This document shows positions 14,246-60,078 of a DNA stretch of 64,000 bases, in pieces. Under the pieces are notes generated by a model. It saw only the letters and a list, made by a program, of their open reading frames with translations, was not told the origin of the DNA and did not search any database. Numbering within the stretch: the stretch's first letter is position 1; each line of letters starts with the position of its first letter. The DNA is taken from sequence record NC_048077.1; one strand, written 5' to 3'. A program made the position numbers and the translations under genes.

Positions 14246-17200
14246 TTACGCGGATTTGGATTTGTCTTTTGTCGCCTTGATTTTATCAAGAGCAGCAACG
14301 CATTTCTTCAAGTTCGAAACAGTGTAACCTGCTTTGATGATCTTGTTGATTTTCGCTTTTGCTTTTGCGACGGACGGTAAGAAACCGATCCACATACCAT
14401 CAGCTTTCTCGAACGTACCAAACTTACGAGTGTTTGGAATTTTCTTGCCAGCAAATTTGGTAGCCATCGGGTTCGTTGCAACGTCGATCATGATGCGCAG
14501 ACGATCTTCCATTACCATCGGATAAGCCTTAACGTGTTTCTTATCGGACGCAGCGCGGTGACGTACAAGGAAGAACTGACGAAGTTCTGATTGCAATTTC
14601 ACTGCCTGTTTCTGATTGAAACTCATGCGGCCTGTCGAAGCGAATACGTCGAGAACATATTCCAAACGTTTTGCTGTCGCGTTGTCGAATTCGTATTTCT
14701 TCTCGATGAAATCCAAGAATTTCTCGAAGTCTTCGTAGTAATAGAAATCCACGTAGACATAAGAACCGAACTCCACAAACTCTTGCTCTTTCAGCATTTT
14801 CGTATCCGGATCGGTAACGTCAGCATACAGAGCAATGAATCCGTTATACACGGTAGGCGTTAAGGTGAAAGCCATATCGGTTTTCGATTCCTTAACAGCT
14901 TCGCGAACAGAAATCGTTGCAGGCTTAACTTTGTTATCCAGCGGTTTCAGCGGTTTCGGTGCAGGACGAACCTTGCCAGCCGCTTCTTTCACGCCTTCAT
15001 TGATCGGCTTATCTGCGCGTTTGTTTTCCGCACGTTTATTCTGGCGAGCAGCTTCACGTTCGATTTTCGGCAGACGCTCACGCGTAGCTTCTTTATCTTG
15101 CGTTTCTTTCTCATCCTGAATCTGATCTTTCGCACGCTTGTTGTTAGACATGCGCTCAACGCGTTTACGATCAGTTTCCGTCGCCCACGGTTTGTTAGTC
15201 TTGAAAAATTCTTCAAGCTGTTTATCCGTTACTTTGGTTGCGACGTGAATTTTCGCAGCGGAAATAGTCATCAACTCATCGGTGCCGTGGATACGAACAC
15301 GCACGGTACTGATTGGATCATCAGCACGCAGGCGAGTTGTTCCCGGTTCATTACGAACCGAAATACCCACGATTTGACCGTTGCCGAATTCTGTTACAAC
15401 TGGCATCAGATACAATGCGCGTTTCAGAATTTCACCGTCGATAAACTCATTCTCTTTCGTCCAGTCACGCAGACGAGTTAAACCATAGCCGTGGCGATCC
15501 GGAATCTTTTGGTTGTTCACAATCGGGCACTGTTCCATGATACCAAAACCACGGAGCGGTTCAGCAGGAGTAAGCGGAATCATCTGCGCAACCGTAGTTT
15601 TACGCATATCAGCAAACTCTTTTTGTTCGATTGAGTTCAACTCTGCTTTCGCAGCGAAGTAATCTTCGAAATCTTCCATTTCGTTATTGGCGATCAGAAG
15701 TTCCGCGTTCATACGAATCGGACGCAAATCATATTTGTCCAGAGGCTCGTAAAGTTCGTTGCCTTTTTCGTCGAACTGAGTTTTCTGCAAAGTCTTCCAC
15801 ATCAAGCGAGCGACTTTACCTACTTCCAAAGTTTTGTTCGTCATGATCCAGTCGATGAACACAACTTCACGCGCCATATCACCCGGCTTGCCGTTTTCGT
15901 CCAGAACAGCAGCAGAAACATCAGGACGGAAAATACGTGCAGTGGATTGATCATAAACACCCGGCGACCACGGAGTATCGCAACGAATGATACGGCTACC
16001 CATCTGCATGTTGTGGCCTTCGGAGATCGCTTGCTCGTTCGCAATCAGAATCTGAATCGTCGGATCAGTTTTGAATGCGTCGAGGTTTGCGCCTTTGTCC
16101 TGACCAAGTTTGCTAACTTCACCGTGATAAAGTACAGCAATCTTTTTGTAGTTAGGAGGCAACGCGTTATAGATTGCGTTTGCAGAACGTGTGTAACGAG
16201 TAAACACGATCAGCTTACCAACTTTCTCTTCTTTCCAGTAGTCCGGATCTTGCGGAGGTGGAACCATTGACGGAGGAAGATCCGCACGCCCATAACCATC
16301 GCTATGTTTACGCGCCAGATATTTTTTGCCATCGTAAACTGCGATATCCAATTCACGCGGCTCTACGCCCGGTTTCCATTCAAAGATCTGGTGAGTACGG
16401 TTCGCAGGATCACGTTGCGCCTGAACTTCGAAGTGTTGTTTGATGCGATCAATAATCGTCACTACTTTCACGGACACAAAGTTTTTCACTCCGGCCTGTT
16501 CGAAAGTTTCGCGAGCGATATCATCACCCATCGGATCGGTAAGCATCATTTCCATGCGCTGAAAATACACGTTCAACTCAACGTTGTTCGCCAGCAAGGA
16601 ACCTAATACATCACCTTCCTCTTCGTTGTTATCTTCCGGATCGATATCTGGATTCGAATCGTTTTCGTCAGCGCTACCGCCTTCGTCATCGTCCGAGTTA
16701 CCGCCTTTCTTCTTCGCGTTTTCCGCAGCTTCGTTAAGCATGTCGAAAAGTTGCTGATACATCGCATCGTAAACTTGTTTGTGCAAGTCTGAATGCGGAA
16801 CAGAAGAATCGTCGATATTTACCGGGAAGAAAGTATCAATCGGCGACGGCAACATAAACGCCCAATGCTTACGTTTATAAGCAATGAATGCGGTGTGGTT
16901 AGACAAACGGGAATGCGCACGACGAATCGCGGCAAGTTCGCCATCACCTTTATCCAGCGTATCGAGATCGCTACCGAAAATTGTCGGAGACATTAACGCA
17001 GCCTGACCAACAACGTCAGTCACGATATCAGTTACCAACGTACCAGTTGCGATACGCGCATAGCGAACGGAAGGAACAGTGAATACAGCTTTCGTATTCA
17101 AGTGAACCGCAGAACCGCCAGCCATGTTTTTCGCTTTGTGACTTTCATCGAGCAGCACGTAACTAAAGTTGAAACGTTTTACGAATTCAACCGCGCCACG

Positions 17201-29125: not shown

Positions 29126-29132
29126 CATTTAT

Positions 29133-29703: not shown

Positions 29704-31668
29704 TTACAGGTAGCGTTTCAGCATTTTAATCGTAAAGTCTACGTCGCCCTCTTCACCAATGAAAGTTGCAATCGGCACATTGGTTTTCGGATCTTCTGAA
29801 ACCTCTGCGCGAACGTCATAATCGCGAGCGAATTCATAGACACTATACCATTCACCATCTTCTTCAAATTCAATGTCGTCACGTTTGCTTGTGAAGCGCC
29901 CATTAGGAATTTCAATTGATTTGGTGGTAGGCGGTGCGGGTTCCGCTTTCTTTTTCAAATACTGAATAAATGAATCTGCCGATGTGGTTTTATCAAAGCA
30001 AACAAACATAGGAGTGTTGCCGCCTGCCTCAAGAGAGGAAACCAAAAGAACAGGTTTCGGATTATATTCATCCATCCAATCGAAAAGATCTGACTGCATC
30101 GAACGACGCTCGCTATAAGTATCAGCGCCTAGATCGTAGAACGTGAATTCCGCAATTGTTTTATCCGTAGGTTTAACTAAGAATTCCCAAATGGCATAAA
30201 ACGTTTTAGGAACAAATTTCTTCGCCTTCTTGAGAGAAGCCAGAGTTGCATACTTGCCATGCAATTTCGACATTGCATAGTATATTTTGAAATAATAAAC
30301 ACTGGTTTCATCAGCAGACTCTAAAACTTCACTCCTGCTATCTTCGCTACAAGTGCGAGCAAGAATCATCCAGAAAGTTACTTCCGGATCATTTGAAAAA
30401 TCTGCCAACTCTGTAGCGATGTTCAAAACCTTCGCCGCATTCTTCTCTTTATCCAGAAGACGTTCGATAAGATAATCTGTTTCGCCTGACTGCAAAAACT
30501 CTTCAACGGGAATCGCTTCATGCGCTGTCCGGATGGATTTAAAATCCTGACGTGCTGCAAGAGTTTTCATAATCTCATAGGCAAGATACTTATACTTTTG
30601 TTTTTTGAATTTAGAGAAAGCGTCACGCAACAAAGAATCTTTTTGCGGATTCTCTTCTATCGCCCTGACCCAAAACTCATAGGCTCTAGGAACCAGCTTA
30701 GAGATATTCTTATATGAAATTGCCGCAGGAATCTTTTTAAAGAGTTCCATTGCAGAATCATCAGTTGCGTGCATACCTCCAACGCGAGAGTTACGCGCTT
30801 TAGCCGCTTTCTCTTTCGCATCATAAAGTTTATCCAGCGCCGCATCCAGTTTGTCCATTCCAAGCAAGGCGAGTTTTGCGATACCTGTAATTGCAAAATC
30901 CCCATCGCCGTCATGATACAAATCTTTCTTGCGTGTGATGATTGAAGGAGAAGACGATTTATCGGTAATAACGTTGATGTTTTCGTCTACCCACTCCTGA
31001 ACTTTTCGCACAAACAGAGTATCTTTCGCGTCCGGATACGCAACTTCGGCAACGTAGCGGAACGAAGATCCGTTTGAGTTCACGAATTTTTTCATCAGCA
31101 AACGCATGATAGGTTTGTTGATGTTCTTATCGTCGGCGTTTACCAGATAAGCAATCAGCGTGTTGGCTTTAACGTCCTTAACGATATACTTCTTATTGCT
31201 TCCATCAACAAGGTTCATGCAGCTTGTCCAGCCGCGATCCGTACTCATACCAGCCACATCATAGGGGTGCATGGAAAGGCAAACGAGTTTATCACCTTTC
31301 GCAGCCGTAACAATCTGACGGCGATTCGCATCGTTATCAAAAAGTTTTTTCAGTTCAGGCTGTTTAGATAAAACTTTGCCGAGACGTTGCACACGATCAT
31401 GGCGATCTTTTACCGTACCTGCCGCATAGTCCAGAAGTTCGAAATTGTTTTCACGAAGGAAAGCGGCAATAGGTGACGGCACATGAGAATCAGGAACGCG
31501 AATATTACGCTCAACCGCATAGTCAAAATAAATGCGGTACGCTTTCTTGCCGCGCTTATGAGATTGCTGTTCGAATATCTCCAGCAATCTCTGATCAGGT
31601 TTCCAGCCACGCATATAGTTTCGATACTGCGAAGGCTGCAAGGCACTAATGCTGACTACTGTTTTCAT
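29704..31668 (-). CDS. Hypothetical protein, paralog A (possible internal head protein)
   Basis: Shares an N-terminal domain of about 220 aa (LSMHPYDVAGMST.RGWTSCMNL) with 31665..33452; begins MKTVVSISA. Confidence 0.75.
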   Translation of the reverse strand: MKTVVSISALQPSQYRNYMRGWKPDQRLLEIFEQQSHKRGKKAYRIYFDYAVERNIRVPDSHVPSPIAAFLRENNFELLDYAAGTVKDRHDRVQRLGKVLSKQPELKKLFDNDANRRQIVTAAKGDKLVCLSMHPYDVAGMSTDRGWTSCMNLVDGSNKKYIVKDVKANTLIAYLVNADDKNINKPIMRLLMKKFVNSNGSSFRYVAEVAYPDAKDTLFVRKVQEWVDENINVITDKSSSPSIITRKKDLYHDGDGDFAITGIAKLALLGMDKLDAALDKLYDAKEKAAKARNSRVGGMHATDDSAMELFKKIPAAISYKNISKLVPRAYEFWVRAIEENPQKDSLLRDAFSKFKKQKYKYLAYEIMKTLAARQDFKSIRTAHEAIPVEEFLQSGETDYLIERLLDKEKNAAKVLNIATELADFSNDPEVTFWMILARTCSEDSRSEVLESADETSVYYFKIYYAMSKLHGKYATLASLKKAKKFVPKTFYAIWEFLVKPTDKTIAEFTFYDLGADTYSERRSMQSDLFDWMDEYNPKPVLLVSSLEAGGNTPMFVCFDKTTSADSFIQYLKKKAEPAPPTTKSIEIPNGRFTSKRDDIEFEEDGEWYSVYEFARDYDVRAEVSEDPKTNVPIATFIGEEGDVDFTIKMLKRYL

Positions 31669-33452
31669 TGTTCATCATCCATCATAACTAATGCAGCATC
31701 AAGAATACTTTCTTCCACTCCGAATCTCAGATCTTTTTCGGTTTGAGGAATCGTAGGGTAGAAAATCATTTTGCCGTGTCCGTCTTCGGTATAACCAAAG
31801 TTGAACACATCTGCGCCCTCTTTGAGAAGTGAAGGGAAACGCGGATCATCGGCAACACGACTGCCTGCATTGAATTCGTTATCCACTTCAAAGTAAGCCG
31901 CGAGTTTCTTACGCGACTCTTCCGACATTTTGCGCATGATTACCGTAATAACATACGAGCCGATACTAACCTCGTAGTTGGAATCAGGTGACTTAGATAA
32001 GTACAGCGCTTTTAATTGGTACTCACTGCGACGGAAACTAACGGCATGATCGATAACATATGCCATAGGGATCACGTCTTCGAATTCTTTCATTGCTTCC
32101 ATGAAAGATTGATCGGTCTTCGCGCTATAACCTTCACCAGCCATATCTGCAATTGCTTCTAAAGCAACTTCGGGATCGCGAATGTAGTTTTTGCGAATAA
32201 ACAAATCAACAAACATTTTCACAATGCGATAGCGAGAAGAAAGTTTCTCGCGAGCAAAAGGTGCCCACACGCCAAGCGAACGAGACAGACGGCGAACCAT
32301 ACTGCCGATAGATTTATTCATGCCGAATACTTTCGCGCCCATTTCAGATTGCTGCAAAATAACTTGCTGCAATACGATGGATGCAAATACTTCACGCTCA
32401 CTGCGAATAGCAAAAGCGGCAATGCGTGCCATCATAAGTTCAAAATCACGCGCACTGAAAACTTCTTTAAATGCTTCGAGGATGGTAGCCAGAACTTCTG
32501 AATTAAGTTCGTGAGGGCTTTCCATTCTTTCTTGCGTGAAGATCATTCCAAACAGTTCATCTTTAAAGCGACGCGCCAGAAGTGACCACTGCATATCGCT
32601 AACGACAGAAAGAGGATGCGTAGAAAGAATATTTTTAACCTCAACCGGATTGCTTTCTGCGTAGCTCAACTGAGGGAAAATACTTTCGCGAGTATCGGAA
32701 TAAAGATCTTCGTGGATACGATAACGATACTCCAGCGACTCGCCTCCGAGAAGTTCTTTATTGATTTTCTCGTCAACGAAACTCTGAACACTCTCGATGA
32801 ACGGAAGGTTAGGTGCCGGATAAACACGCTCAACGTGATAAATGAATTTGGATTTTGTTTGTTCAGAATAGAAACGTTTAATCAGAACACGACTCAACGG
32901 ACGTTTGATATCACGGTCGGTTGTGTCAACGAGATATGCAATCAGCGTATGCTGTTTTACATCGTCACGCACAAACGCTTTGTTGATGCCATCGACTAGA
33001 TTCATGCAGCTAGTCCAACCGCGCCCGGTACTCATTCCCGCAACGTCATACGGGTGCATACTCAAGCAGATAGATTTCTTTCCGCGAGTAACTTCAACCA
33101 GAGCTTTACGTGATGGATCAGTTTCGAAAATCTTTTTCAGTTCCGGATCTTTTAAAACTTTACCCAAGCGCATGATGCGATTGTGTTTGTCCTTCACCGT
33201 GCCTGAAAGATAGTCCTCAAGCACAAAACCCTTCTCAATCAAATAATCTTTGATTTCAGAAGGGCATTCAGGCGCGAAAGTTTTAATCAATTTGTCAGAC
33301 TGAAAATCGAAGTACAGTCGCATAGCTTTTCTGCCAGTACGACCGCTGATTTTCTGAAAGAGTTGCAGCATTTTAGGATCAGGCCGCCACATCTGCATGA
33401 ACGGTCGATACTGCGAAGGAGTCAATGCACTTAAACTGACTTCGATTTCCAT
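31665..33452 (-). CDS. Hypothetical protein, paralog B (possible internal head protein)
   Basis: Paralog of the downstream gene; begins MEIEVSLSA. Confidence 0.75.
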   Translation of the reverse strand: MEIEVSLSALTPSQYRPFMQMWRPDPKMLQLFQKISGRTGRKAMRLYFDFQSDKLIKTFAPECPSEIKDYLIEKGFVLEDYLSGTVKDKHNRIMRLGKVLKDPELKKIFETDPSRKALVEVTRGKKSICLSMHPYDVAGMSTGRGWTSCMNLVDGINKAFVRDDVKQHTLIAYLVDTTDRDIKRPLSRVLIKRFYSEQTKSKFIYHVERVYPAPNLPFIESVQSFVDEKINKELLGGESLEYRYRIHEDLYSDTRESIFPQLSYAESNPVEVKNILSTHPLSVVSDMQWSLLARRFKDELFGMIFTQERMESPHELNSEVLATILEAFKEVFSARDFELMMARIAAFAIRSEREVFASIVLQQVILQQSEMGAKVFGMNKSIGSMVRRLSRSLGVWAPFAREKLSSRYRIVKMFVDLFIRKNYIRDPEVALEAIADMAGEGYSAKTDQSFMEAMKEFEDVIPMAYVIDHAVSFRRSEYQLKALYLSKSPDSNYEVSIGSYVITVIMRKMSEESRKKLAAYFEVDNEFNAGSRVADDPRFPSLLKEGADVFNFGYTEDGHGKMIFYPTIPQTEKDLRFGVEESILDAALVMMDDEQ

Positions 33453-33462
33453 GATTAACCTC

Positions 33463-33834
33463 TTACGCTTTCACTTCCAGTTCGTGATCGCCGCTGTTCC
33501 AAATAAGTTCGCGAATATTGCGCGGCATAATAATGCAACCGCTCGAAGCGGTTCCGGGATTCTTGACGCTATCGCCGTGAATCTGGAAAGCACTACGACC
33601 GAACATTTGATTTTCTTTCGCCGGAGAAAGATCCATCGCATACGGGCCAGTTTTCTGACTTGTGCGCGGAGCGTTAATTGTGTAGTGACCAATCGGAAGT
33701 GGCCCTTCACCAACAACAGCAGTATCGGCAACAACATTTTTGTGTTTACCTTTTCCGCTATAACCAGTCGCAACGCGCTTCCCGTTTTTATCCAGCATTT
33801 CACCGGACGTAATATGATAAGTCCACATCAACAT
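33463..33834 (-). CDS. Tlde1/DUF2778 family L,D-transpeptidase-fold enzyme
   Basis: GYSG..GEGPLPIGHYTI...FGRSAFQIHGDS...ASSGCII carries the H-x(n)-SxGC catalytic signature. Confidence 0.8.
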   Translation of the reverse strand: MLMWTYHITSGEMLDKNGKRVATGYSGKGKHKNVVADTAVVGEGPLPIGHYTINAPRTSQKTGPYAMDLSPAKENQMFGRSAFQIHGDSVKNPGTASSGCIIMPRNIRELIWNSGDHELEVKA

Positions 33835-34397
33835 TTACCTCTATAGCGAAGATAGTTTTGCAGACAGCAAAAAACTGTCTCTTTAAGTTTATGTTCCATC
33901 TGCGCATCTTTTTGGGAAGGATCTCGCAAGCAAACTTCTACTGTTTCACGCGCCCAATCTACCGAAGCCCAATCCACATCAAACATCCAACCGAATCTTT
34001 CATGCCAATCGCGAAGAATGTCATCCAGATCTGGAGTACGATCAACGCCTAAATCAGAAAGAGGATAAATCAGAGAATAAAGTGGAGGGGGTGCAGATAG
34101 GCTAGTGCCTGCGCCGTCGAATTTATCGAAAGCCTTTTGCACATGCCAGAGAGTTTCTTCGGTGGAGAGTGGTTCAACTTTTCGCAGCACATATTTATTT
34201 GCCGACAAACCAGCTTGCGCAAGAGTAGCACGGCAAACAACATTGTCGCCTTCATCATTTATGTACGCGAAAAGATATTGCGTGTTGCTGATCTTTCGAG
34301 AAGCAACAACACGCACATCCAGCTTTCCACGATTCAAAACTTCTTGCAAGGCACGGTTGCTTAATGCCGCCGAGATAGAAACTAAAATCTCCATCAT
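33828..34397 (-). CDS. Hypothetical protein with the N-terminal ISLS-type motif
   Basis: Begins MMEILVSISAA. Confidence 0.7.
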   Translation of the reverse strand: MMEILVSISAALSNRALQEVLNRGKLDVRVVASRKISNTQYLFAYINDEGDNVVCRATLAQAGLSANKYVLRKVEPLSTEETLWHVQKAFDKFDGAGTSLSAPPPLYSLIYPLSDLGVDRTPDLDDILRDWHERFGWMFDVDWASVDWARETVEVCLRDPSQKDAQMEHKLKETVFCCLQNYLRYRGKC

Positions 34398-34412
34398 TGC
34401 CTCGCAATAGTT

Positions 34413-35405
34413 TTATTTACCTGCGTTGGCTGTGATGCCTTTCGCCGCTTTCAGGTAGTTGCCTGTAGAGAGTTTGGAACCTTTGACAGCTTCGATGGAT
34501 TTAACTGCTTTCGCAAGTTTCGCCGCCAGAGATTTCAGAGTTCCGCGAATGGTTCCGCGACCAGCACCAGTGGCGCTATGCGTCAGTTTATATTCTTCGC
34601 CCTCGCGTTTGATCGTCGCTTTGAATCCTTTAGATTCAAACTGGATTTTATCGCCAGACGCTTTCAGCGTGGAATTTTTACCAGTGACGTTTTTGGCAAT
34701 CTCATTAATTGCTTTCATATGAGATTCCGGTACAGATTTAGAAATCTTCACATTCTTCTGAACAGTTTTACTCTTAGGTTCGCCTGTAGAACCGGTGCCT
34801 CCTTTTGGGAGAAGGTGTCCATACAGTCCTTTTCTACCCCCTTCCAATTTTTTCTTATCTGCGGCGGCGCGTGCTTGCTGGATCGTACCGCCAGTGGAAT
34901 TTTTGGCTTTTTTGGTTTTGGTTTTGCTGGCAAGCTGATCAAAAACAGACTGGCTTGGAGCACGAACCAAAGTAACAGGTTTCGCAACGCCTTTAACTTT
35001 CAGAGTTGAGCCAACAGAAATTTTTGCAAATTTCTTCGCATCAAAAAGATCCGGAGCGCTGAAACCAAACGTAGCTTTGATGCCGAAAACTTTACGCAGA
35101 GCTTTGGATGCAGCAGACATTGCCTGAGTAGCCGCAGTTTTGCAACGGCGCACTTCTGGCTGCATTGTGGCAATGCGAGTTTTGCGTGCATCAGAAGGTT
35201 TCGCTTTCTGAGCTTCGCGCAGTTTTTCGAGATTGGCTTTGGTTTTGTGATACTTGCTCGCTTCTTTATAAGCGGTTTTAGCCAGCTTAAAAGCAGCAGC
35301 AATATCAGGGCGCACTTTGGGCAAAAACATGATCTTCGTGTTAGCGCCTTTACCGATAACTTGCCACGACGGGGCGACAGCAGACAGGCTGAGAATCACT
35401 TTCAT
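34413..35405 (-). CDS. Lysine/alanine-rich basic protein (possible internal head or DNA-binding protein)
   Basis: 330 aa, very basic; begins MKVILSLSAV. Confidence 0.7.
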   Translation of the reverse strand: MKVILSLSAVAPSWQVIGKGANTKIMFLPKVRPDIAAAFKLAKTAYKEASKYHKTKANLEKLREAQKAKPSDARKTRIATMQPEVRRCKTAATQAMSAASKALRKVFGIKATFGFSAPDLFDAKKFAKISVGSTLKVKGVAKPVTLVRAPSQSVFDQLASKTKTKKAKNSTGGTIQQARAAADKKKLEGGRKGLYGHLLPKGGTGSTGEPKSKTVQKNVKISKSVPESHMKAINEIAKNVTGKNSTLKASGDKIQFESKGFKATIKREGEEYKLTHSATGAGRGTIRGTLKSLAAKLAKAVKSIEAVKGSKLSTGNYLKAAKGITANAGK

Positions 35406-35407
35406 TT

Positions 35408-35875
35408 TTATTTTACCTTAACAGCTTTTGCTGCATCGAATTTTTCCTGAGAGACAAACTTGAACGCAACCAGTTTGCCCAATTTCCCAACGCGTGCCGT
35501 AGGTTTACCCGGCTTGTTGATAACCGAATAGGAAAGACCAGCAACTTTGCGTGCAGCGGAAACTTCGGACTTCAAATGCGCAAGTTTTTTATTGTCTTCC
35601 TGAATTTCTGCTTTCAGTTTAGCGCGGCGGGTTTTCAAACTCTGCTTACCGTCCGGAGTTTTAGCGGCTTTGATTTGTGCCGCCATTTTAGCATAGCGCT
35701 CTTTTTTAGTTTTCAGGGCGTTGAATGCTTTGTTACTTTCGGTACGCGCTTTCAGATAGGCTTCAAACATTGTTTTAACCAAAGGGCTTACCAGAATGCT
35801 TTTGCCGTCGAATTTGTATTTCGAACTAGCGGAAGTCGATTGCTGTTCAACCGACAGATCAATTTCTACAATCAT
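35408..35875 (-). CDS. Lysine-rich protein
   Basis: Begins MIVEIDLSVEQQSTSAS; helical K-rich body. Confidence 0.7.
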   Translation of the reverse strand: MIVEIDLSVEQQSTSASSKYKFDGKSILVSPLVKTMFEAYLKARTESNKAFNALKTKKERYAKMAAQIKAAKTPDGKQSLKTRRAKLKAEIQEDNKKLAHLKSEVSAARKVAGLSYSVINKPGKPTARVGKLGKLVAFKFVSQEKFDAAKAVKVK

Positions 35876-36447
35876 TTTGTTACTCCAACATTAGCAGTGA
35901 TATTAACAACACGGTTGAACCAACCATAAATATTAGATTCTTGCGACTCATCTTTAACAGCGATGTTGTACAGGAAAGCAAGACGCAATCCATTATACAC
36001 ACGCGCAAGGATTTTAACGTCACGCACTTTGCAATACGATTCCAAAGCGGCAAGAGTCTTTGGCCCGATGTTAGCGGCAGGTGCAAAATCCGGATAAAGT
36101 TTCTGGCGGTCATTCAGAACGTTCAGCAAACCTTGAAGCGGTTCGATTGCATTTGCGGGAGACGAGTTAACAGCGAAATCGAAAACCCATACAGCAAGTT
36201 CTTCGCTGAACTTAGCAAGCTGATCGCATTTGCACATATCCCAAAAGTTTTTACGATAGATTGCTACCGCTGTCTCTTTCGGTAAAGTTTCCATGCTTCC
36301 AGTGTAGCCAAAATCACGCGCAGTTTTCTCGATGATTCCCCACCGAGTTGCTTTGCCCCGATCCGTGGCACGGTTCGTAAACTTACTGCCGCCTTCACGT
36401 CCAATAACTTCTTCAATTGCCTTTTCAGCAAGATTTGCAGTAGCCAT
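35872..36447 (-). CDS. Glycoside hydrolase family 108 muramidase with C-terminal PG-binding domain (endolysin-like)
   Basis: REGG...DRGKATRWGI, YRKNFWD, VFDFAVNS, IGPKTL and YGWFNRV motifs. Confidence 0.9.
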   Translation of the reverse strand: MATANLAEKAIEEVIGREGGSKFTNRATDRGKATRWGIIEKTARDFGYTGSMETLPKETAVAIYRKNFWDMCKCDQLAKFSEELAVWVFDFAVNSSPANAIEPLQGLLNVLNDRQKLYPDFAPAANIGPKTLAALESYCKVRDVKILARVYNGLRLAFLYNIAVKDESQESNIYGWFNRVVNITANVGVTK

Positions 36448-36500
36448 AATATTTTCCTCTCCTTGCAGGATAGAAGAAAATTAGCATTAGAATAGAAAAA

Positions 36501-36519
36501 GGGCAGCACAAGGCCACCC
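36501..36519 (-). terminator. Intrinsic terminator, conserved family copy 2
   Basis: Identical GGGTGGCCTTGTGCTGCCC followed by TTTTT. Confidence 0.75.
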
Positions 36520-36526
36520 TTTTAAA

Positions 36527-36850
36527 CTAAATGAACTTATAGATTGCCAGTGCTGTAGCGCCTTGAAATAAACCGATATCCAACACATAAAACTTTTTAT
36601 AGTGCGAAGGCATGTCGTCACACAAATACGCGTACAGATAGAATAGCCCAATATTCAACAGCGCAGACACAACGTAAAAAATCATTTCCTGCGATTGTGT
36701 GTTGAATGCCGGAACATAACTCAACGACAGCAGAAAACTTATTGCGAGCGCAATTGAAATTTTTGGATTGTTGCGAAAGTCAGACAACTCACATCCGATA
36801 ACCACAACAATGACAGCCATCCAAATAAAATACTCTGTTTCGAGAGTCAT
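36527..36850 (-). CDS. Small multi-pass membrane protein
   Basis: Three to four hydrophobic segments in 107 aa. Confidence 0.65.
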   Translation of the reverse strand: MTLETEYFIWMAVIVVVIGCELSDFRNNPKISIALAISFLLSLSYVPAFNTQSQEMIFYVVSALLNIGLFYLYAYLCDDMPSHYKKFYVLDIGLFQGATALAIYKFI

Positions 36851-37563
36851 TAGATTCCCTGATTGGCGACCAACTCATCAGTGACGTTAGCAATTTTCTC
36901 AACGTTACCTTTGATGTATCCAAGTTCAAAAATCTGAACACGATGTTTGATAACCGCCTGCCCCATCGTCATACACGTTCCATTATTCAAATCAATAAAG
37001 GCATCGCGCAGACGATATGTAACAGGTTTTTCCAGAATAGAAATTAGCTTCGCCATTGTGCTATTGCTGATTCTCAATTCAAGAGCTTCAATCTCTTCCC
37101 GAATGTCAGTAACGCAGCCGCTGTAAATCCATTTGCAAATCGTGTTAGTGATAGGCTTTTGGTGAGTTTTACTTGGCATAGTATAAATGAAAGTCATCAG
37201 GCTATAGAACAAACTTCCTTCTATCGCACGCTGTTTTAAATCTTTCAGATACGATCCAACGGGAACAACTCTAGGCCGAGTAGGTTCGATTTCCTGAACA
37301 GGCTTATCGACTTCCAGACCGTATTTTTCCAGCAGCGTGCTATGACCAAACACAAAGAAAATGTGTTGAGGCATTTGACGAATACTCACCGCGTTACGGT
37401 CAAATTCTTTTGTCCCGACAACAAAAATATGTTTGCGGTATTGCTTATCAGGATCGAGTGCAATTCCTTGAGGGCAATATGTCACGCGAACTTTAGGATC
37501 TTGCGAACGCAACCACGCAAACACCTGTTCCGGACTTTGCTGAGTTACAGCAATCACTGGCAT
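36850..37563 (-). CDS. Hypothetical protein
   Basis: 237 aa ORF in operon with the SbcC-like gene. Confidence 0.7.
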   Translation of the reverse strand: MPVIAVTQQSPEQVFAWLRSQDPKVRVTYCPQGIALDPDKQYRKHIFVVGTKEFDRNAVSIRQMPQHIFFVFGHSTLLEKYGLEVDKPVQEIEPTRPRVVPVGSYLKDLKQRAIEGSLFYSLMTFIYTMPSKTHQKPITNTICKWIYSGCVTDIREEIEALELRISNSTMAKLISILEKPVTYRLRDAFIDLNNGTCMTMGQAVIKHRVQIFELGYIKGNVEKIANVTDELVANQGI

Positions 37564-37565
37564 TT

Positions 37566-37817
37566 TTATTTCCCCAACGCATTCTTGATTTTAACAACCA
37601 TTTCCGGATGAGCGATAATAACGTCATGCACCATATAAACTTTATCCGATGGAACACTGACAGTATTAGAAGTTTTCAGCCGGAATATTTTCGCAACGAT
37701 TTGCATAAAGCGATTGCGCTGTACAGGAACAACTTTGCTTTCAGTGAGCAAGGGATCAGAAATGATCCGATAACCCTTAAACAGAACAGGATTATCAAGA
37801 ATGCTTTGAACGCTCAT
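37566..37817 (-). CDS. Hypothetical protein
   Basis: 83 aa ORF, translationally coupled. Confidence 0.6.
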   Translation of the reverse strand: MSVQSILDNPVLFKGYRIISDPLLTESKVVPVQRNRFMQIVAKIFRLKTSNTVSVPSDKVYMVHDVIIAHPEMVVKIKNALGK

Positions 37818-40117
37818 CAGATTTCCTTCTTAGTAAGGACTGAAATGCCTTTGGTCTTTTCGACTGTCCACTGCTTGTCAGAAAATTCTTCAACAGGCTG
37901 CGGAGTAAGCCAATAGATGTTAGGCACTACACGTTTCAAAATTGGTAAGAAGTTTTCGATCAAGTGATCGCGAACAGCAGGACTACAGTTTGATTCCGGC
38001 TCATCCAGCACAATGAAATCAGGTCGGCGGTTTTCCGGAACAAACGGAAGAATACTTATCGCCCACAACAAACGGAAGCAGTTTGTTTCTGCGCCGCTCA
38101 TGATACTGAAATCAGTTGTGGTTCCATTACTCAAACGAGTTACTTCCGCACCGATACCTTGAGGACAAGTGAACAAGCGCCACTGCATAGGTTCCGGATA
38201 AACAAGGTGGCTGTTCTCGTTTAGTTTATCACTGATCAATTGGAGACGACCTTCCATCGCTTCAAGTTTCAACGCGGTGCCACTGTATGCTTTATAAAGC
38301 GTTTCGTACAGCACGCGTTTATCGATCAACGGTTGGAGTTTTGAAAGTTTGGTACGCAGATCAACAAGCGTATCTTCGTAGTGATCGTATTCCTGAACTT
38401 TTGAAATAACTTTCTGCGCACTGCGCTCAAGTTCGCCGATCTGCGAAGTGAGTTCTTTAATCTGCGCATCAACGCTATTGTATTCCTTTTCAATTTCCTT
38501 CGCGCTTTTCGAAGGTTTCTTGAATGCTTTCAACGACTGATTAAGATCGCGGAATTCTTCGAGTCGGGCAATACGCTTCTCGATATTCTTGCACGGTCTT
38601 TTCGGTTCGTGAACTTGTTCCGGCTTCTCCAGAGATTCCAGCTTAACAAGAATAGCGTCGCGCTTCTTGATAGTCTCAAACTCTTCGGCGATAGCATCAA
38701 TCTTCGCACTGACTTTCTTCAAGCGCTTTTTCAATTCGTCTTTGTCGTGTTCGGGTTTAGAAACTTTGTTCTTTTCCAGATCGCGCAATTCAGATTTGAT
38801 TTCGTAATACTCTTGCTGAGAGCGAATATCTTTAATCAGAGTTTCCGCTTTATCGGCAGCGCGTTTCATTGCACGCAGGTCAACGTCCTGTCCACACGTA
38901 GGGCAAGTTTTGCCGTCAACCTTATGAGAAAGTTTTTCGTAAGCACGAATGATACTCTGCGCTTCTGCCAATTCCTCATCCAGTTCTTCGGATTTTTTCT
39001 TTGGCTTTTTCAGTTTGGAAAGTGATTTGGTTAGACGCTTAACGTCGTCCTTCCATTCCTGATACGCTTCGAGTTCTTCTTCAATGGTGCCTAGAAGTTC
39101 TTCAATCTCTTCCTCTTCATCAACCAGTTTCGAATGCTTTTTAGAAAGTGCTTTCGGATCGGCTTCTGATTCTGGAAGTTCTTTTAGTTCTTCTTTCAGT
39201 GCTGCATGACGCTTGCGATATTTTTTGAGTTCAGCTTGATAGTCTTCAAACTTCTCAATCTTACGCAAGATACCTTCGAGATTTTTCAATTCCTTTTTCG
39301 GGTTATCAGAAACAACACCGAGCTTTTCAATCTCAGAAAGAATGTCGTAATAACGACGAGCATCTTTTCGTTCGGACGTAAGTTCTGCGAAACGTTCGTA
39401 CAGTTCGTTTCGCTTCTCTTTCAGTTCGTCGCTTTTCTTCACAAACTTCTTCGCTTTCTTGCGCGTGTCGTCTGTTACTTTCAATGCTTCTTGTTTTCGC
39501 GCAGTCACATCATAGATATCTGCTACGCCTTTGCTTTCCTTCTCCGCATCTTTGGCAGCGTCCAGTTTCAATTTGACTGCGGCACGAATACGATCATAAA
39601 CATCCAGACCAAACAACTCTGTCAGATATTTAAGACGTTCAGCAGGCTTCGCACGCTGGAAGGGATGAGGCACTTGCGTTTGAATATAGCAGTAACTATA
39701 AAACTCATCCGGAGAAAGAGGAAAGTGTTTTTTGATCCACGTCTTCGCAACGTCCTGACGATCAACTTTCTGGTCTTCGCCGTTCAGATAAACTTTATAT
39801 TTGCTTGCCGTCTGTTCAACACGCACCAGACCACCGAGCGGAGATTGCCACTCAAGAGTTATCGAACTTCCTTTCTTGAGCATGTTTGTTTTGCTGCGCT
39901 TTGTAAGAGCAAGTGGATCTGCTTCGTACAATAAATTCGGCAGCGTACCGAACATCAAACTTTTACCGACGCCGTTTTTATTATCTCTTACGTTCGGGCT
40001 ATCGTTGTTGATTCCTGAAACAGTTACGAAACCTTGTTTGTCCAGATTTTTGAGTTCCAGTTCCTGATACACAACAACGTTTTTTAACTCAATACTCTTT
40101 AGCGAGATACCGGGCAT
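37817..40117 (-). CDS. sbcC: SbcC/Rad50-like SMC ATPase
   Basis: Walker A NGVGKS, long coiled coil with zinc hook CPTCGQ, signature MSGAE and Walker B IVLDEPE. Confidence 0.92.
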   Translation of the reverse strand: MPGISLKSIELKNVVVYQELELKNLDKQGFVTVSGINNDSPNVRDNKNGVGKSLMFGTLPNLLYEADPLALTKRSKTNMLKKGSSITLEWQSPLGGLVRVEQTASKYKVYLNGEDQKVDRQDVAKTWIKKHFPLSPDEFYSYCYIQTQVPHPFQRAKPAERLKYLTELFGLDVYDRIRAAVKLKLDAAKDAEKESKGVADIYDVTARKQEALKVTDDTRKKAKKFVKKSDELKEKRNELYERFAELTSERKDARRYYDILSEIEKLGVVSDNPKKELKNLEGILRKIEKFEDYQAELKKYRKRHAALKEELKELPESEADPKALSKKHSKLVDEEEEIEELLGTIEEELEAYQEWKDDVKRLTKSLSKLKKPKKKSEELDEELAEAQSIIRAYEKLSHKVDGKTCPTCGQDVDLRAMKRAADKAETLIKDIRSQQEYYEIKSELRDLEKNKVSKPEHDKDELKKRLKKVSAKIDAIAEEFETIKKRDAILVKLESLEKPEQVHEPKRPCKNIEKRIARLEEFRDLNQSLKAFKKPSKSAKEIEKEYNSVDAQIKELTSQIGELERSAQKVISKVQEYDHYEDTLVDLRTKLSKLQPLIDKRVLYETLYKAYSGTALKLEAMEGRLQLISDKLNENSHLVYPEPMQWRLFTCPQGIGAEVTRLSNGTTTDFSIMSGAETNCFRLLWAISILPFVPENRRPDFIVLDEPESNCSPAVRDHLIENFLPILKRVVPNIYWLTPQPVEEFSDKQWTVEKTKGISVLTKKEI

Positions 40118-40119
40118 AG

Positions 40120-40320
40120 TTACATCCAGACGTGAGCAGGTTCGTACCAGAGATTATCATTCGGATAATCCTTCGCAAGTTTTTCCAATTCCTTTTCCGG
40201 ATCGGCAAACACCTGACTTACGATTTCTTTTTCGTGTTCAGGTTCATGCGTGTAAGGATTGATATCAATCGCATGGCGGCAGATGTGAAAGCATGGGATT
40301 TGTCGTGTAAGTGAAAACAT
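40120..40320 (-). CDS. Hypothetical protein
   Basis: 66 aa ORF downstream of a CTGTAAA motif. Confidence 0.55.
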   Translation of the reverse strand: MFSLTRQIPCFHICRHAIDINPYTHEPEHEKEIVSQVFADPEKELEKLAKDYPNDNLWYEPAHVWM

Positions 40321-40380
40321 AATGAATACCAGAGTTAATTAAACCTATATCCATATTTTTACAGTTTTAAACGTGAAAAA

Positions 40381-40398
40381 GGGCAGCAAGTGCCACCC
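40381..40398 (-). terminator. Intrinsic terminator, conserved family copy 3 (variant loop)
   Basis: GGGTGGC-ACTT-GCTGCCC followed by TTTTT. Confidence 0.7.
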
Positions 40399-40400
40399 TT

Positions 40401-40640
40401 TTATTTCGGAAGTTCCGTGAAAAATTCATCGCCGTTATAATAGCCATCAAAAAGAAATGGCCCGGTTACTGCTTCGAGTTTAAGTTTCTCTTTTAAAAGT
40501 TTCATATAGCGTTCGCCATATGCACCTAAGTCAGCAGGCCATTTACGTGCCGTATCATCGACGTAACAGAGGAATGTATAATCCCAATTTTGTTGTGCGA
40601 GATTAGGCGCGTTGGAAAGCGAAACAAGAATTTGCATCAT
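40401..40640 (-). CDS. Hypothetical protein with the N-terminal ISLS-type motif
   Basis: Begins MMQILVSLSN. Confidence 0.65.
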   Translation of the reverse strand: MMQILVSLSNAPNLAQQNWDYTFLCYVDDTARKWPADLGAYGERYMKLLKEKLKLEAVTGPFLFDGYYNGDEFFTELPK

Positions 40641-40653
40641 TCACCTTCATAGT

Positions 40654-41088
40654 TTATCGACGACGCTTTTTCCGCTTGATGGTGGATTTAGGCAATTTGA
40701 TTTTCTTCATTGCCTCGCGTGCATCGGAGATTTGTTTACGCAAACTAGCTCGACGTTCTTCGATAGCTTTTTTGTTTGCATCGGTGACTTCCGTTTTCTC
40801 CAGTCGCTCAAGTTCATTGATCAAACGATCAACTACTCCAGCGCGTCCGACTTTTTGTTGCTGGATGCGTGCAATATCAGTAGCGCGACGGCGAACCTTT
40901 CCGCGCTCTGCCAATTCCTTTCTAGCGCCTTGCACATTACGCTGATTTTCAGTGGCGTCCTGTAGATTATCACGCGCCAACTTTTCACTGCGCTGCGCCT
41001 TCTTCACGTTGTCCTTAGCATTTTCCAAAACCACTTTCTGTTCTTCGAGAGGGCTTTTCATTTTGCTGAGACTAATGAGAACTTGCAT
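40654..41088 (-). CDS. Coiled-coil basic protein with the N-terminal ISLS-type motif
   Basis: Begins MQVLISLSK. Confidence 0.7.
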   Translation of the reverse strand: MQVLISLSKMKSPLEEQKVVLENAKDNVKKAQRSEKLARDNLQDATENQRNVQGARKELAERGKVRRRATDIARIQQQKVGRAGVVDRLINELERLEKTEVTDANKKAIEERRASLRKQISDAREAMKKIKLPKSTIKRKKRRR

Positions 41089-41090
41089 AG

Positions 41091-41768
41091 TTACTCCAGA
41101 ATATTTTCGGTGCGCGGTTTAAACGTTCCTTTATTTCCGATTGCCGATTTGATTTGCGTAGGCGAGAACACAACATAGAAAAAGTGCTCACCACGTTTAG
41201 CAATAATCCCATCACGTCCAGTTGCGGCTGCAAACACTTCCGGAAAGCGCCATGATTCTGGCTCACCTGCGTAGATATCCTGAAACAGATTATGGCCAGC
41301 AGTTATAACATCCATGCCAACAAAGTCTTCAAGATATTCTTTCTTCGCACTTGCCAGACCTTGATATTCAATATCATAGTTTTGTGCGAGAAACTCATTA
41401 AAATGAGGGCGCGTTAAACCGTTAGCAATTTTAGTTGCTTGCGTAAGAGTCATACGCGGAGGCTTTTCAAAAATGATAGGCTTAGTGATTTTCAAATAGA
41501 CGGGCATAGTGCTGCCACTGCCTTTTGTGTAGTAGCGAGCGAATTCGGCAGAATCAGTGAAATAAAATCCAATACCGTATTCGTCGTTGCCTCCACCCAA
41601 ACGCTTTTTATCGAAGGTGTCGAAATTTCCCGGCGTGCCATGATAGACAACGAGCGGATTACCTTGCGGATCTTTGACAACTGATTTTCCAAACCACTTG
41701 TCGAAGGCTGCTTGATCTTTTGAAGTGAAGGCCGAAATAGGCTTCGACAAACTTATTAGAAGTTCCAT
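41091..41768 (-). CDS. ADP-ribosyltransferase-like protein (ART-PolyVal-type domain)
   Basis: FDKWFGKSVVKDPQGNPLVVYHGT, GIGFYFTDS, PVYL, RDGII and VVFSPTQIKSA fit the ART domain found in phage polyvalent proteins. Start at ATG 41768 (MELLISLSK). Confidence 0.75.
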   Translation of the reverse strand: MELLISLSKPISAFTSKDQAAFDKWFGKSVVKDPQGNPLVVYHGTPGNFDTFDKKRLGGGNDEYGIGFYFTDSAEFARYYTKGSGSTMPVYLKITKPIIFEKPPRMTLTQATKIANGLTRPHFNEFLAQNYDIEYQGLASAKKEYLEDFVGMDVITAGHNLFQDIYAGEPESWRFPEVFAAATGRDGIIAKRGEHFFYVVFSPTQIKSAIGNKGTFKPRTENILE

Positions 41769-41788
41769 CGCTAAATCCTTAAAAGAGA

Positions 41789-41810
41789 AAAGCGGGAGCA
41801 ATCCCGCTTT
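41789..41810 (-). terminator. Intrinsic terminator
   Basis: AAAGCGGGA-TTGC-TCCCGCTTT followed by TCTCTTTT. Confidence 0.7.
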
Positions 41811-41888
41811 GGAATAAAGTTTCGGTAGCTCGTACCTACCGCCGAAGTTTTACTTCTTGGCGGTAAAGAAGAGATAAGGATCACCTCC

Positions 41889-42368
41889 TTACTGACCGTA
41901 GATCCTACGGCTTGGATACGACTTCATGCGATCAACGCCGGGAGTAACTGCCAGCGTTTGATAATAATCTTCCAACGCATCAACGTTAGGAAAGAACACC
42001 AGTTGATCTTTCATCTTACTCCAAACAAGATACGAAAGTTTTCGGTTATCACCTTCAATCGCCAGATAGAAATCACCTGCGCCGAAAGGCGTTTTAACAG
42101 GCATAGGCTTCATGAAGTTTACGAAATCGCTCGCTTGTTTGAGGACACGATCATTGTAGATACAGATTACCCCATCCTCGCCGGAAGGAACAAAATGCAA
42201 CTCACCAGTGCGCGATTTAAGCATTCCAATTGGAGATTTTGACGTGTCAACATCTGCACCGAAAATCTTCTTACACATATGCTTGATTTCAAGCGGATTC
42301 AGGTGCTCAGAATAACGCGTCCACAATAAGTCTTCCGAGACTTTTGAAAGGGAAAAGACGATTTGCAT
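41889..42368 (-). CDS. Hypothetical protein with the N-terminal ISLS-type motif
   Basis: Begins MQIVFSLSK. Confidence 0.7.
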   Translation of the reverse strand: MQIVFSLSKVSEDLLWTRYSEHLNPLEIKHMCKKIFGADVDTSKSPIGMLKSRTGELHFVPSGEDGVICIYNDRVLKQASDFVNFMKPMPVKTPFGAGDFYLAIEGDNRKLSYLVWSKMKDQLVFFPNVDALEDYYQTLAVTPGVDRMKSYPSRRIYGQ

Positions 42369-42440: not shown

Positions 42441-42447
42441 ATTAAAA

Positions 42448-50626: not shown

Positions 50627-51178
50627 TCACTTTCTGTTTTTCATGTTTAGGCGTTTCTGCAATTTCTTGCCGATCTGCGTCATAATGGCTGCTACGGCGT
50701 CTCCATCGTTCTTTCCGACCGCTTCTGCCAATCTGTCGCCCTGTTCTCGACTCAGTTCCGGCATAATCATTTTCAACATTTTACTGCGAGCATTTGCGCT
50801 TTTTGATCTTGAAACGCTAACACCGCCATTCAAATTGAATTTGCGATCAACACTTTGCTGTGTGATAGCTTGAAGATCCCGCGCAAGTCCAGCGAATAAT
50901 CTCTGGATAGGAGAAATTTCGCCGCCTTCTGGAATTTTATACAGCGTGCGAAGTTCCTGATCTTCTTTTTCACACGCAACTGCACGCACGCTTGTTTCGC
51001 GCACATCAACGGCGTCTGCCTGTTTAACATGCGGAGTTTCGCGCAATACAATTGTTGAAGATCCTTCATTCGAATCATCTGCAATTGGTGCCTCGTTAGT
51101 TGTTTCTTTACGAGCTTCCCAACCGAGCGGAATATCTTGTGAAGGATCTGCGCTTCCGAAAATGATTTCAGTTTGCAT
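50627..51178 (-). CDS. Hypothetical protein (possible virion protein)
   Basis: 183 aa with GAGG RBS; begins MQTEIIFGSA. Confidence 0.65.
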   Translation of the reverse strand: MQTEIIFGSADPSQDIPLGWEARKETTNEAPIADDSNEGSSTIVLRETPHVKQADAVDVRETSVRAVACEKEDQELRTLYKIPEGGEISPIQRLFAGLARDLQAITQQSVDRKFNLNGGVSVSRSKSANARSKMLKMIMPELSREQGDRLAEAVGKNDGDAVAAIMTQIGKKLQKRLNMKNRK

Positions 51179-59676: not shown

Positions 59677-60078
59677 ATGCACGTACTTATTTCGTTGGGT
59701 GCTACCACTCAAGACAAAGGGCGCACTGCTCTGGACTCCCCTGAGTCAACCACAACCCACGCGGATCTTTCTGAATATTCTTCTCTGGAAAAACGTTTAC
59801 GCCAGCACGAAGAAGAAAAACAGAAAACCAAAGTGGCAGAAAAAGCCGCACCTAAGAAAACTGTAAAAAGTAAGAAAGGTGACGGCGAAGAATCTAAAGA
59901 AGATGATTCTGAGGGCTTCGGCGATGATACAAATGATTTTGGATCTGACGGTGGAGACGAAAGCGATGATTCAGGTGGAGGCAAAGGAAAGTCGAAAGAT
60001 TCAGAGGATGAGGAATCCGGAGATTCGGATGACGAGTCTGGAGATTCTGACGAAGACTTTGCAGACGACGAAGAGTGA
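59677..60078 (+). CDS. Acidic low-complexity protein with the N-terminal ISLS-type motif
   Basis: Begins MHVLISLGA after a GAGGT RBS; D/E/S/G-rich tail. Confidence 0.7.
   Translation: MHVLISLGATTQDKGRTALDSPESTTTHADLSEYSSLEKRLRQHEEEKQKTKVAEKAAPKKTVKSKKGDGEESKEDDSEGFGDDTNDFGSDGGDESDDSGGGKGKSKDSEDEESGDSDDESGDSDEDFADDEE

Follow-up and report, generated by a model that had tools for sequence, protein, structure and literature searches.

Why should phage proteins that otherwise have nothing in common begin with the same eight residues? The question is raised by a window of 64,000 nucleotides from sequence record NC_048077.1 (the window is the whole stretch of DNA that was analysed), in which genes clustered at positions 29704 to 42368, and a few genes beyond them, encode proteins with N-termini of the form M-x-φ-x-φ-[S/D]-[L/I]-[S/G], φ standing for a hydrophobic residue throughout. 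This region matches Dickeya phage vB_DsoM_JA33/JA11, a ‘hairy’ jumbo myovirus (genus Salmondvirus, 255 kb), with 100% identity; the window does not differ from JA33 in its first 49.3 kb, and further on has one single-nucleotide polymorphism (SNP) and one indel. We name genes after their JA33 homologs and call the phage JA11. Judging from sequence comparisons, we put at roughly 60% the probability that this octapeptide, hereafter the tag, is a lineage-specific capsid- or virion-targeting leader, in the role that the capsid-targeting sequence (CTS) plays for the internal proteins and for Alt in phage T4.

An N-terminal octapeptide on unrelated proteins

We counted the motif in the 321 deposited JA33 coding sequences (CDS), which had been annotated without knowledge of it, and took expectations from composition and from shuffling residues 2-15 (1000 shuffles). 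Eleven JA33 proteins begin with the tag, where about 0.04 would be expected. The strict pattern M-x-[IVLT]-x-[IVLF]-S-[LI]-S matches eight N-termini, and the pattern used in a preliminary description of this DNA matches nine, against 0.03-0.06 expected and a maximum of one in the 1000 shuffles, so the motif is more frequent than in shuffled N-termini. Inside proteins, the strict core is found at only 4 places among the 79,750 residue positions of the JA33 proteome. With a position-specific scoring matrix (PSSM) built from the tags, the 11 proteins score 13.4-21.7, every one of them at residue 2; the highest-scoring internal site of the proteome reaches 14.0, followed by one at 11.4. A run of 16 consecutive genes, JA33_176-191, contains eight of the bearers, and all tagged genes are separate open reading frames (ORFs) of 78-654 aa. 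The 14 starts listed in the preliminary description all translate as listed, at the positions listed there. Two of them open with ‘MM’ (JA33_179 and JA33_188); in both the deposited start is the second ATG, which places the tag in register and gives the better Shine-Dalgarno spacing.

The codons of the tag are not fixed. Serine is encoded by both AGY and TCN, leucine by TTA, TTG and CTN (five leucine codons in all), and we saw no conserved nucleotides in the DNA upstream of the tagged start codons. Because synonymous codons vary and the upstream DNA is not conserved, conservation acts at the level of the peptide, as the preliminary description had stated. The same two observations rule out a repeated DNA or promoter element at the gene starts. 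A comparison of JA33 with JA29 in the manner of dN/dS (non-synonymous to synonymous change) found 3 of 72 tag codons with non-synonymous differences, compared with 10.3% elsewhere (p = 0.11), the divergence between the two phages being too small for this measure.

What follows the tag differs from gene to gene. When the first 12 residues are removed, BLASTP within the genome links only the pair JA33_176/177, which bears out the earlier statement that the downstream sequences are unrelated apart from one pair of paralogs. An AlphaFold model of residues 1-280 of JA33_177 (64-sequence alignment) has a predicted local distance difference test score (pLDDT) of 89.7, with residues 1-11 as coil and residues 1-6 below 50; in the model of JA33_190 (pLDDT 91.4) residues 1-10 have the lowest confidence, with a mean of 54. 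In these models, the tag is an appendage ahead of complete domains and outside the fold. A common fold or paralogy of the bearers was ruled out by the same models together with the absence of similarity after trimming.

The domains behind the tag recur across phages. An ART-PolyVal domain (ART, ADP-ribosyltransferase) is found on tagged proteins at least four times: in JA33_190, in Lu11_205 of Pseudomonas phage Lu11 (a weak match), and twice in a 264-kb metagenomic contig, L014, whose tagged proteins also include an SprT-like protein and a weak match to an ATLF-like peptidase. For JA33_190, GenBank gives the label ‘putative SAM-dependent methyltransferase’, which is not supported: Pfam finds a full-length ART-PolyVal domain (E = 2e-27) and no methyltransferase match. 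PHROG profiles place the ART domain of this protein inside polypeptides of 1664-2900 residues. Tagged Lu11_197 is a topoisomerase IB, and JA33_121, which begins MLFFVSVSA and lies between two tail-tube paralogs, has a KMPT-N domain that is complete at residues 20-83 (Pfam).

JA33_176 and JA33_177 share a conserved 260-residue domain with the nearly invariant motif SRHPYD-x-AGMST-x-RGWTSCMN and invariant residues that include R45, R115, S131, D136, R144, W146 and C149. We found 150 homologs at E<=1e-3, with C-terminal tails that vary between members (HEAT, LRR or DUF4116 repeats). Searches of Pfam, PHROGs and, by Foldseek, the PDB gave no significant match to this domain (best E 0.14, weak and GNAT-like only), and it is a widespread uncharacterised phage domain.

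A literature search found no description of the N-terminal motif within the limits of the collection searched, in line with the earlier view that it had not been reported, and we accordingly treat it as undescribed.

Relatives of the tag and of its cargo

Erwinia phage Y3 (Sasquatchvirus) keeps the tag on orthologs that have only 25-46% identity to their JA33 counterparts. The tags of the Y3 cluster (MQIFVSLSS, MKIFVSLAA, MKILISLSA, MKIFISLSA, MEIFVSLSK and MRVMISLNS) have a flavour of their own, M-[KQE]-I-F-[VI]-S-L-S; MKIFVSLAA belongs to Y3_195 (ortholog of JA33_179, 25.6% identity), MKILISLSA to Y3_205 (ortholog of JA33_189) and MEIFVSLSK to Y3_208 (ortholog of JA33_191, 33% identity). In JA29, the ortholog of JA33_180 begins MKVTLDLSA, with an S to D change.

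Orthologs also help to judge the looser variants that had been put forward alongside the eleven. Two of these are supported: JA33_201 has a Y3 ortholog, Y3_220, with the clearer tag MRVMISLNS, and JA33_164, a giant SNF2-family helicase, is matched by MINISTSAT in Y3. The third, JA33_162 (position 13645), is not supported. Other orthologs of JA33_164 begin MGSLFTLNSLSAA (gp202 of phage PaBG) and MKRANWNETPLAAAV (Lu11). The preliminary description further held that replication enzymes lack the motif, a statement that fails in relatives, where the Lu11 topoisomerase IB is tagged and the giant SNF2 helicase loosely so.

In Lu11, MKIQLAVA or a close variant starts 13 of 17 consecutive genes (Lu11_197-213), with third codon positions free; a scan of IMG/VR for the exact MKIQLAVA coding pattern returned Lu11 itself only. 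On contig L014, seven consecutive genes start MKI[RM][IV]SLS, MKILVSLSA, MNRVLVSLAA or MHILISMAA. Of 120 homologs of the JA33_176/177 domain on metagenomic jumbo-phage contigs, at least 69 begin with a leader of 8 residues that ends [S/A/D]-x-[S/A/G], and ART-PolyVal homologs on jumbo-phage contigs show S-L-S, A-L-A-T or A-V-A-T, or S-R-S flavours. The flavour is common to all bearers of one genome, which is the pattern expected from co-evolution with a single shared partner.

Some tagged genes stand beside genes of the particle. Nine viral contigs of Lu11-like phages have, immediately upstream of the scaffold gene, a gene for a tagged 120-aa protein (the Lu11_068 family, M..[IL]A[LI]AASPLT). 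This family came from a loose tag pattern run over the six-frame ORFs of 80 capsid-protein loci, which gave 33 matches against 17 on reversed sequence, a high background, so that we used only the coherent Lu11_068 family. On contig L015, two tagged genes adjoin the sheath and tube genes.

A key pointer to function comes from more distant homologs of the cargo in T4-like phages that encode Portal_T4, Peptidase_S77 and Gp23. There, members of the ART-PolyVal and JA33_176/177 families have, at the same N-terminal position, a leader of 8-13 residues that ends in L/I-x-E and is followed by Ala or Ser. At least 22 members of the 176/177 family show M...φ-x-E directly before a conserved A-L, and about 13 more were missed by the anchor pattern. 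Thus MRAYEFITE/ALKPSQYR and MRIQELVE/ALKPSQYR (a slash within a sequence marks the junction) stand against MKIMISLS/ALRPSQYR in a tagged member, and ART homologs read MRINEIIRE/SILDNPSF, MRYHEILYE/NILDNPSF and similar.

In T4, the gp21 protease cuts after L/I-x-E, a cleavage originally observed at a Glu-Ala bond; residues 1-10 of internal protein IPIII suffice to bring proteins into the head; the leader is common to several unrelated internal proteins; and the ADP-ribosyltransferase Alt is packaged, processed and ejected (PMC9026906). Since the homologs carry a T4-type leader at the aligned junction, the JA11 tag sits at the position of a T4-type targeting propeptide, with the same length and on homologous cargo. 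The preliminary description had proposed capsid targeting by analogy with T4; with homologous cargo and an aligned position, this reading now rests on homology as well as on analogy.

Genes for these homologs are often located in the head module or next to it. Contig L017 encodes Portal_T4, Peptidase_S77 and Gp23, and between its portal and protease genes lie two ART-PolyVal genes and two other genes that start MRINEI[IV] or MKIKELLRE. On contigs L018 and L024, a 176/177-family gene is found 3-4 genes from those for gp23 and the S77 protease; in 2576 phage records, gp21-type proteases match that of L018.

As a separate observation, one leader can be reused on unrelated neighbours in T4-like metagenomic phages, with MRINEI[IV] present three times (L017, 8481-12315) and MRY[HK]EI[LI] twice (L025, 10001 and 17865). 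This suggests that sets of CTS-marked cargo can be enumerated in T4-like phages too.

Evidence from virions comes from two relatives. RsoM2USA_132 is a homolog of JA33_177 (E = 4e-30) with 674 residues and a calculated mass of 76.62 kDa, and starts MKTFKQFLNTLME/ALPLS. ORF132 of RsoM2USA, at 76.64 kDa, is among the ten most abundant virion bands by liquid chromatography with tandem mass spectrometry (PMC8504454). RsoM2USA_132 matches this ORF and is a member of the 176/177 family published as an abundant virion protein.

The head module of PaBG (capsid gp80, gp81 and acidic scaffold gp82) is adjoined by the tag-like genes gp83-89, with the starts MLIKINLLEAVAAK for gp83, MHTSLSAV for the topoisomerase IB gp84, MKVSFSLK for gp86 and MELAIAS for the SprT-like gp89. 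Both gp83 and gp202 are among the 14 published PaBG virion proteins, gp202 as a 221-kDa band (PMC7412058 Table 1). We considered gp202, the ortholog of JA33_164, as proof for the tag, a use that is weakened by the loose tags of the helicase orthologs and by the untagged helicase of Lu11.

Head maturation and competing explanations

Motifs similar to the tag occur at conserved positions of head proteins in the same phages. Two conserved sites of small residues are found in the group's capsid proteins, L-A-L-S-[E/S]-S/T-G-E at about residue 32 and a second at about residues 63-75, which reads V-S-E-S in JA11, H-S-Q-S in Y3 and φ-A-T-A-S in Lu11-like phages. A cut after S66 of the JA11 capsid protein would take off 18% of its mass, and a site at about residue 66 fits the loss of ~20% of mass reported for the PaBG capsid protein. 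The scaffold-like JA33_129 contains L-V-S-[IL]-S/R and F-D-S-L-S/A in both JA11 and Y3; at the aligned place the PaBG scaffold has M-V-A-V-A/A, and the Lu11 scaffold has 17 φ-A-x-A and 0 φ-S-x-S. The capsid and scaffold motifs covary with tag flavour between two clades, φ-S-x-S in the S-type and φ-A-x-A in the Lu11-like phages, and would be compatible with a protease cutting after small-x-small.

The candidate for this protease is JA33_131 (JA33 record 100679-102600, outside the window), recognised only by phrog_18299 ‘head maturation protease’. Against the S77 profile, hhalign gave a probability of 0.2%, from shallow alignments. Without similarity to S77 or other curated families, a different specificity is possible, and the leader may be cleaved after S-L-S by this unclassified head protease of the group.

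Further observations concern this part of the genome. JA33_131 carries a conserved Cys-rich, zinc-ribbon-like insert, and the adjacent JA33_130 combines a KMPT-N domain with a C-terminus that weakly resembles SpvD. JA33_129 (JA33 record 98637-100595, outside the window) lies between the capsid-protein and protease genes, is extremely acidic and Asp/Glu-rich, and has CxxC pairs; it looks like a scaffold or core protein, not the annotated ‘putative ATPase’, a label that recurs in Lu11, PaBG and Y3.

From these elements we propose the following mechanism. The free, flexible N-terminal peptide would be recognised in the assembling prohead, by the scaffold or core or by the inner surface of the shell, and the recognised cargo would become trapped in the head. 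The leader would probably be clipped after the second small residue (S-L-S here, A-V-A in Lu11) by the group's own head maturation protease. The cargo would then exit together with the DNA during infection and act on the host ahead of all phage gene expression. In evolution, the tag would have been fused to a changing set of unrelated effector-type proteins: ART-PolyVal, SprT-like and other peptidase-like proteins, topoisomerase IB, and the 260-residue domain with its variable repeat tails. Targeting, cleavage and ejection of the JA11 proteins themselves are steps that we infer.

The T4-type leaders on homologs of two cargo families, the presence of RsoM2USA ORF132 in virions, the appendage-like character of the tag and the whole-genome switches in flavour all speak for capsid targeting. 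Several observations weigh against it. The JA11 cluster lies between the genes for a single-stranded DNA-binding protein, SbcC and DNA polymerase III, not in the head module, and lysis-type genes (Tlde1-like and the GH108 lysin), both without a tag, are interleaved in it. The published virion presence covers relatives (RsoM2USA ORF132, PaBG gp83 and gp202) and not S-L-S- or A-V-A-tagged proteins, PaBG gp83 and the SNF2 helicase being tag-like only. The ART gene with a T4-type leader on contig L025 is not near head genes. Inside head proteins, φ-[SD]-x-[SG] is not significantly enriched, the motif being too short for enrichment. The switch from S to A comes down to roughly a single phylogenetic contrast, and the scaffold and capsid proteins of the Pseudomonas phages are, in parallel, visibly richer in Ala; lineages L079 and L083 have S-type tags yet A-rich capsid-protein sites. 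Lastly, JA33_131 has no Pfam or NCBIfam match even at E = 1-10 and no match to PDB sequences, and as it matches no curated protease family its specificity cannot be predicted.

Some of these points would be accommodated if the tag directed proteins to the virion but stayed on them, docking cargo to the tail lumen, the baseplate or the ‘hairs’, maybe by strand addition as in contractile injection systems. We consider this unlikely, though it is the best placed of the alternatives. It would explain tagged genes in tail modules (JA33_121 between tube paralogs, the pair by the sheath and tube genes on L015), the lack of a consistent Glu-type site after the tag and of enrichment of the core motif in head proteins, and it suits phages that have duplicated sheath and tube genes and a VgrG-like spike. 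However, leaders of the aligned T4 type are head propeptides in T4 itself, homologs are encoded in head modules, the tagged Lu11_068 family adjoins the scaffold gene, and enzymes such as ART and topoisomerase IB are unlikely as fibre components.

A slightly less likely explanation is that the tag is a handle unrelated to the particle, either a degron or a chaperone or adaptor signal that sets a shared lifetime or localisation for host-takeover proteins. AAA+ proteases typically use short terminal peptides as handles, and the location of the JA11 cluster among replication and recombination genes would suit such a role. Residue 2 of the tags is always large (K/E/Q/H/I/R), so that Met1 is retained and the terminus is uniform. 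This leaves unexplained, however, the gp21-type propeptides and head-module position of the T4-like homologs, the abundant virion member of the family, and the core motif shared with capsid and scaffold sites.

It is improbable that the tag is a historical relic, an N-terminal segment of the abundant 176/177 family that spread to neighbours by recombination or duplication and has no present common function. The bearers are clustered, an extended S-L-S-A-x-x-P-S is common to 176, 177 and 180 and loosely to 164 and 201, and the conserved domain of the 176/177 family includes the residues that follow the tag. Yet the DNA shows no similarity in the tags or upstream of them and codons vary freely, the tag is kept where overall identity has dropped to 25-46%, changes of flavour hit all bearers of a genome together, and the motif is strictly specific to residue 2.

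A translational effect, with the first codons selected for efficient initiation or early elongation, or for an effect on the nascent chain, and the peptide irrelevant, is very improbable. Synonymous differences between JA33 and JA29 are lower in tag codons (8% vs 22%), but across paralogs and genera the amino acids are conserved and the codons are not, including the AGY/TCN serine switches, and the tag is found on only ~4% of genes and missing from highly expressed structural genes. Least probable of all is that the tag forms the first strand of a fold common to bearers that are divergent paralogs: its alternating hydrophobic pattern resembles a β-strand, but two confident AlphaFold models set it outside the fold, as low-confidence coil or short helix, and Pfam domains are complete and begin 20-33 residues in, with no similarity after trimming.

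Capsid targeting thus remains our preferred explanation. We suggest, tentatively, a wider generalisation: large phages of several lineages would mark co-injected effectors with a leader of 8-13 residues that co-evolves with the prohead protease, with L/I-x-E in T4-like phages, M-x-φ-x-φ-S-L-S in Salmondvirus/Sasquatchvirus and MKIQLAVA in Lu11-like phages. If so, the genome of an uncultured jumbo phage would be enough to list its injected proteins, the S-L-S and A-V-A lineages would point to a head maturation protease of a so far unclassified kind, cutting after small residues and not Glu, and the SRHPYD..GRGWTSCMN domain of 260 residues would be a widespread uncharacterised injected effector. 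For JA11, the observations suggest that the head maturation protease belongs to no curated family and may have a specificity other than Glu. Injected proteins are the first to act against host defences, and virion proteomics is otherwise the only way to find them; a packaging signal would flag about 12 JA11 proteins of unknown function, and would make the ART, SprT-like and topoisomerase IB proteins and the new domain in relatives candidate effectors of early takeover or anti-defence. It would also offer an 8-residue handle to load foreign proteins into jumbo-phage heads, as the CTS does in T4.

Gene neighbourhood and known systems

The tagged genes and the two tag-like genes of the window are listed in the table below.

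Table 1. Tagged and tag-like genes in the window (JA33 homologs; window coordinates)
Gene	Position	Strand	Length (aa)	N-terminus	PSSM score	Remarks
JA33_176	29704..31668	-	654	MKTVVSISA	15.6	paralog of JA33_177; residues ~10-260 are the conserved SRHPYD..GRGWTSCMN domain
JA33_177	31665..33452	-	595	MEIEVSLSA	21.0	same domain family as JA33_176; tag at 33426-33452
JA33_179	33828..34394	-	188	MEILVSISA	19.2	first ATG at 34397
JA33_180	34413..35405	-	330	MKVILSLSAVAPS	16.6	
JA33_181	35408..35875	-	155	MIVEIDLSV	13.4	D-L-S variant
JA33_188	40401..40637	-	78	MQILVSLSN	20.4	first ATG at 40640
JA33_189	40654..41088	-	144	MQVLISLSK	21.7	phrog_28362
JA33_190	41091..41768	-	225	MELLISLSK		ART-PolyVal at residues 33-216 (whole profile)
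JA33_191	41889..42368	-	159	MQIVFSLSK	18.8	
JA33_212	59677..60078	+	133	MHVLISLGA	18.8	S-L-G variant; outside the main cluster, on the other strand
JA33_220	63132..63413	+	93	MKVEIDLGK	15.4	D-L-G variant
JA33_164	14246..20080	-	1944	MQIFSTSAA		SNF2-family helicase; shortened loose tag
JA33_201	50627..51178	-	183	MQTEIIFGSADPS		degenerate tag

Within the tag cluster, a Tlde1/YkuD-type L,D-transpeptidase-like gene and a lysin gene with GH108 and PG_binding_3 domains, both untagged, are found at 33463-33828 and 35872-36447, and the next gene (36527-36850) begins with a hydrophobic stretch. The three may form a lysis cassette.

A near-identical terminator-like hairpin (GGGTGGCCTTGTGCTGCCC followed by a T-run) is present three times on the minus strand, at 29103-29130, 36497-36523 and 42419-42443. 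After each of the two exact copies comes ...GCTAATTTT..., about 70 nt ahead of the next start codon. A fourth terminator lies at 41789-41810, and the four divide the tag cluster into units of gene 191, genes 190-183 and genes 182-175.

The core of the Lu11 ‘middle/late promoter’ (ACTGTAAATA) occurs eight times in JA33; one of these copies precedes the DNA polymerase gene (window positions 13267-13276, minus strand). For at least six copies, a gene start in the same orientation follows 44-160 nt downstream. The tag cluster contains none of the eight, and the core is therefore uninformative on timing. A scan for sigma-70 promoters stayed below the shuffle expectation.

The SNP and indel that distinguish the window from JA33 lie at about 49336 and 51397. 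The window has ORFs of 553 aa (48547-50208) and 372 aa (51181-52299) in place of the shorter or split annotations JA33_200 and JA33_202/203. The ‘DNA repair helicase’ at 4551-7657 is annotated as two CDS, JA33_155 and JA33_156, about 1.07 kb apart with no gene annotated between them, a split also remarked on in the Dickeya phage paper; the gap contains a 375-aa ORF on the opposite strand (5462-6589), and an intervening mobile element is possible.

How does the tag compare with known systems that sort proteins by a short terminal sequence? Encapsulin cargo-loading peptides are short, terminal and made of alternating hydrophobic and small residues, and they dock unrelated cargo to the inner side of an HK97-fold shell. 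They are usually C-terminal and belong to non-viral compartments, and their likeness to the tag is a resemblance only. In the contractile injection systems PVC and Afp, disordered N-terminal leaders load unrelated payloads into a phage-tail-like particle; at a length of tens of residues, these leaders serve, with the help of an ATPase, to fill the tube of a particle that has no head.

Sec signal peptides share a local feature, as S-x-S, A-x-A and S-x-G of the tags fit the small-x-small (-3/-1) rule. However, the tag has five residues before the site, no hydrophobic core of 7-15 residues and no consistent basic n-region, and the tagged cargo consists of cytoplasm-acting enzymes. The two peptidoglycan enzymes of the cluster, the Tlde1-like protein and GH108, are untagged.

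The cargo repertoire itself (ART-PolyVal, SprT/zincin-like, KMPT-N and SNF2 helicase) is that of the polyvalent proteins, for which delivery along with the DNA is predicted (PMC7824862, citing Iyer et al. 2017). In the JA11 group, by contrast, the domains are separate genes, each with its own leader, and not one giant fusion, and no MuF-type packaging domain is seen.

The propeptides of phiKZ, 201phi2-1 and SPN3US resemble the proposed system in that many head-loaded proteins share a minimal three-residue site with a small residue at P3 (PMC9026906). Their sites, S/A-x-E, differ in that they all end in Glu and are cut by diverged gp21 homologs, and no shared octapeptide at the extreme N-terminus is described there.

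The closest parallel is the CTS of T4 (IPI-III and Alt, processed by gp21). The sequences are unrelated: JA11 tags end in S-[LI]-S, D-L-S or S-L-G (A-V-A in Lu11) and not in L/I-x-E, and no consistent Glu follows them. The JA11 protease is not detectably a Peptidase_S77, and the JA11 tagged genes lie outside the head module. What the two have in common is a very short leader at the extreme N-terminus of unrelated proteins of one phage, and a cargo that includes an ADP-ribosyltransferase in T4 as in the JA11 tagged set. The tag is probably a new sequence class within a known type of signal.

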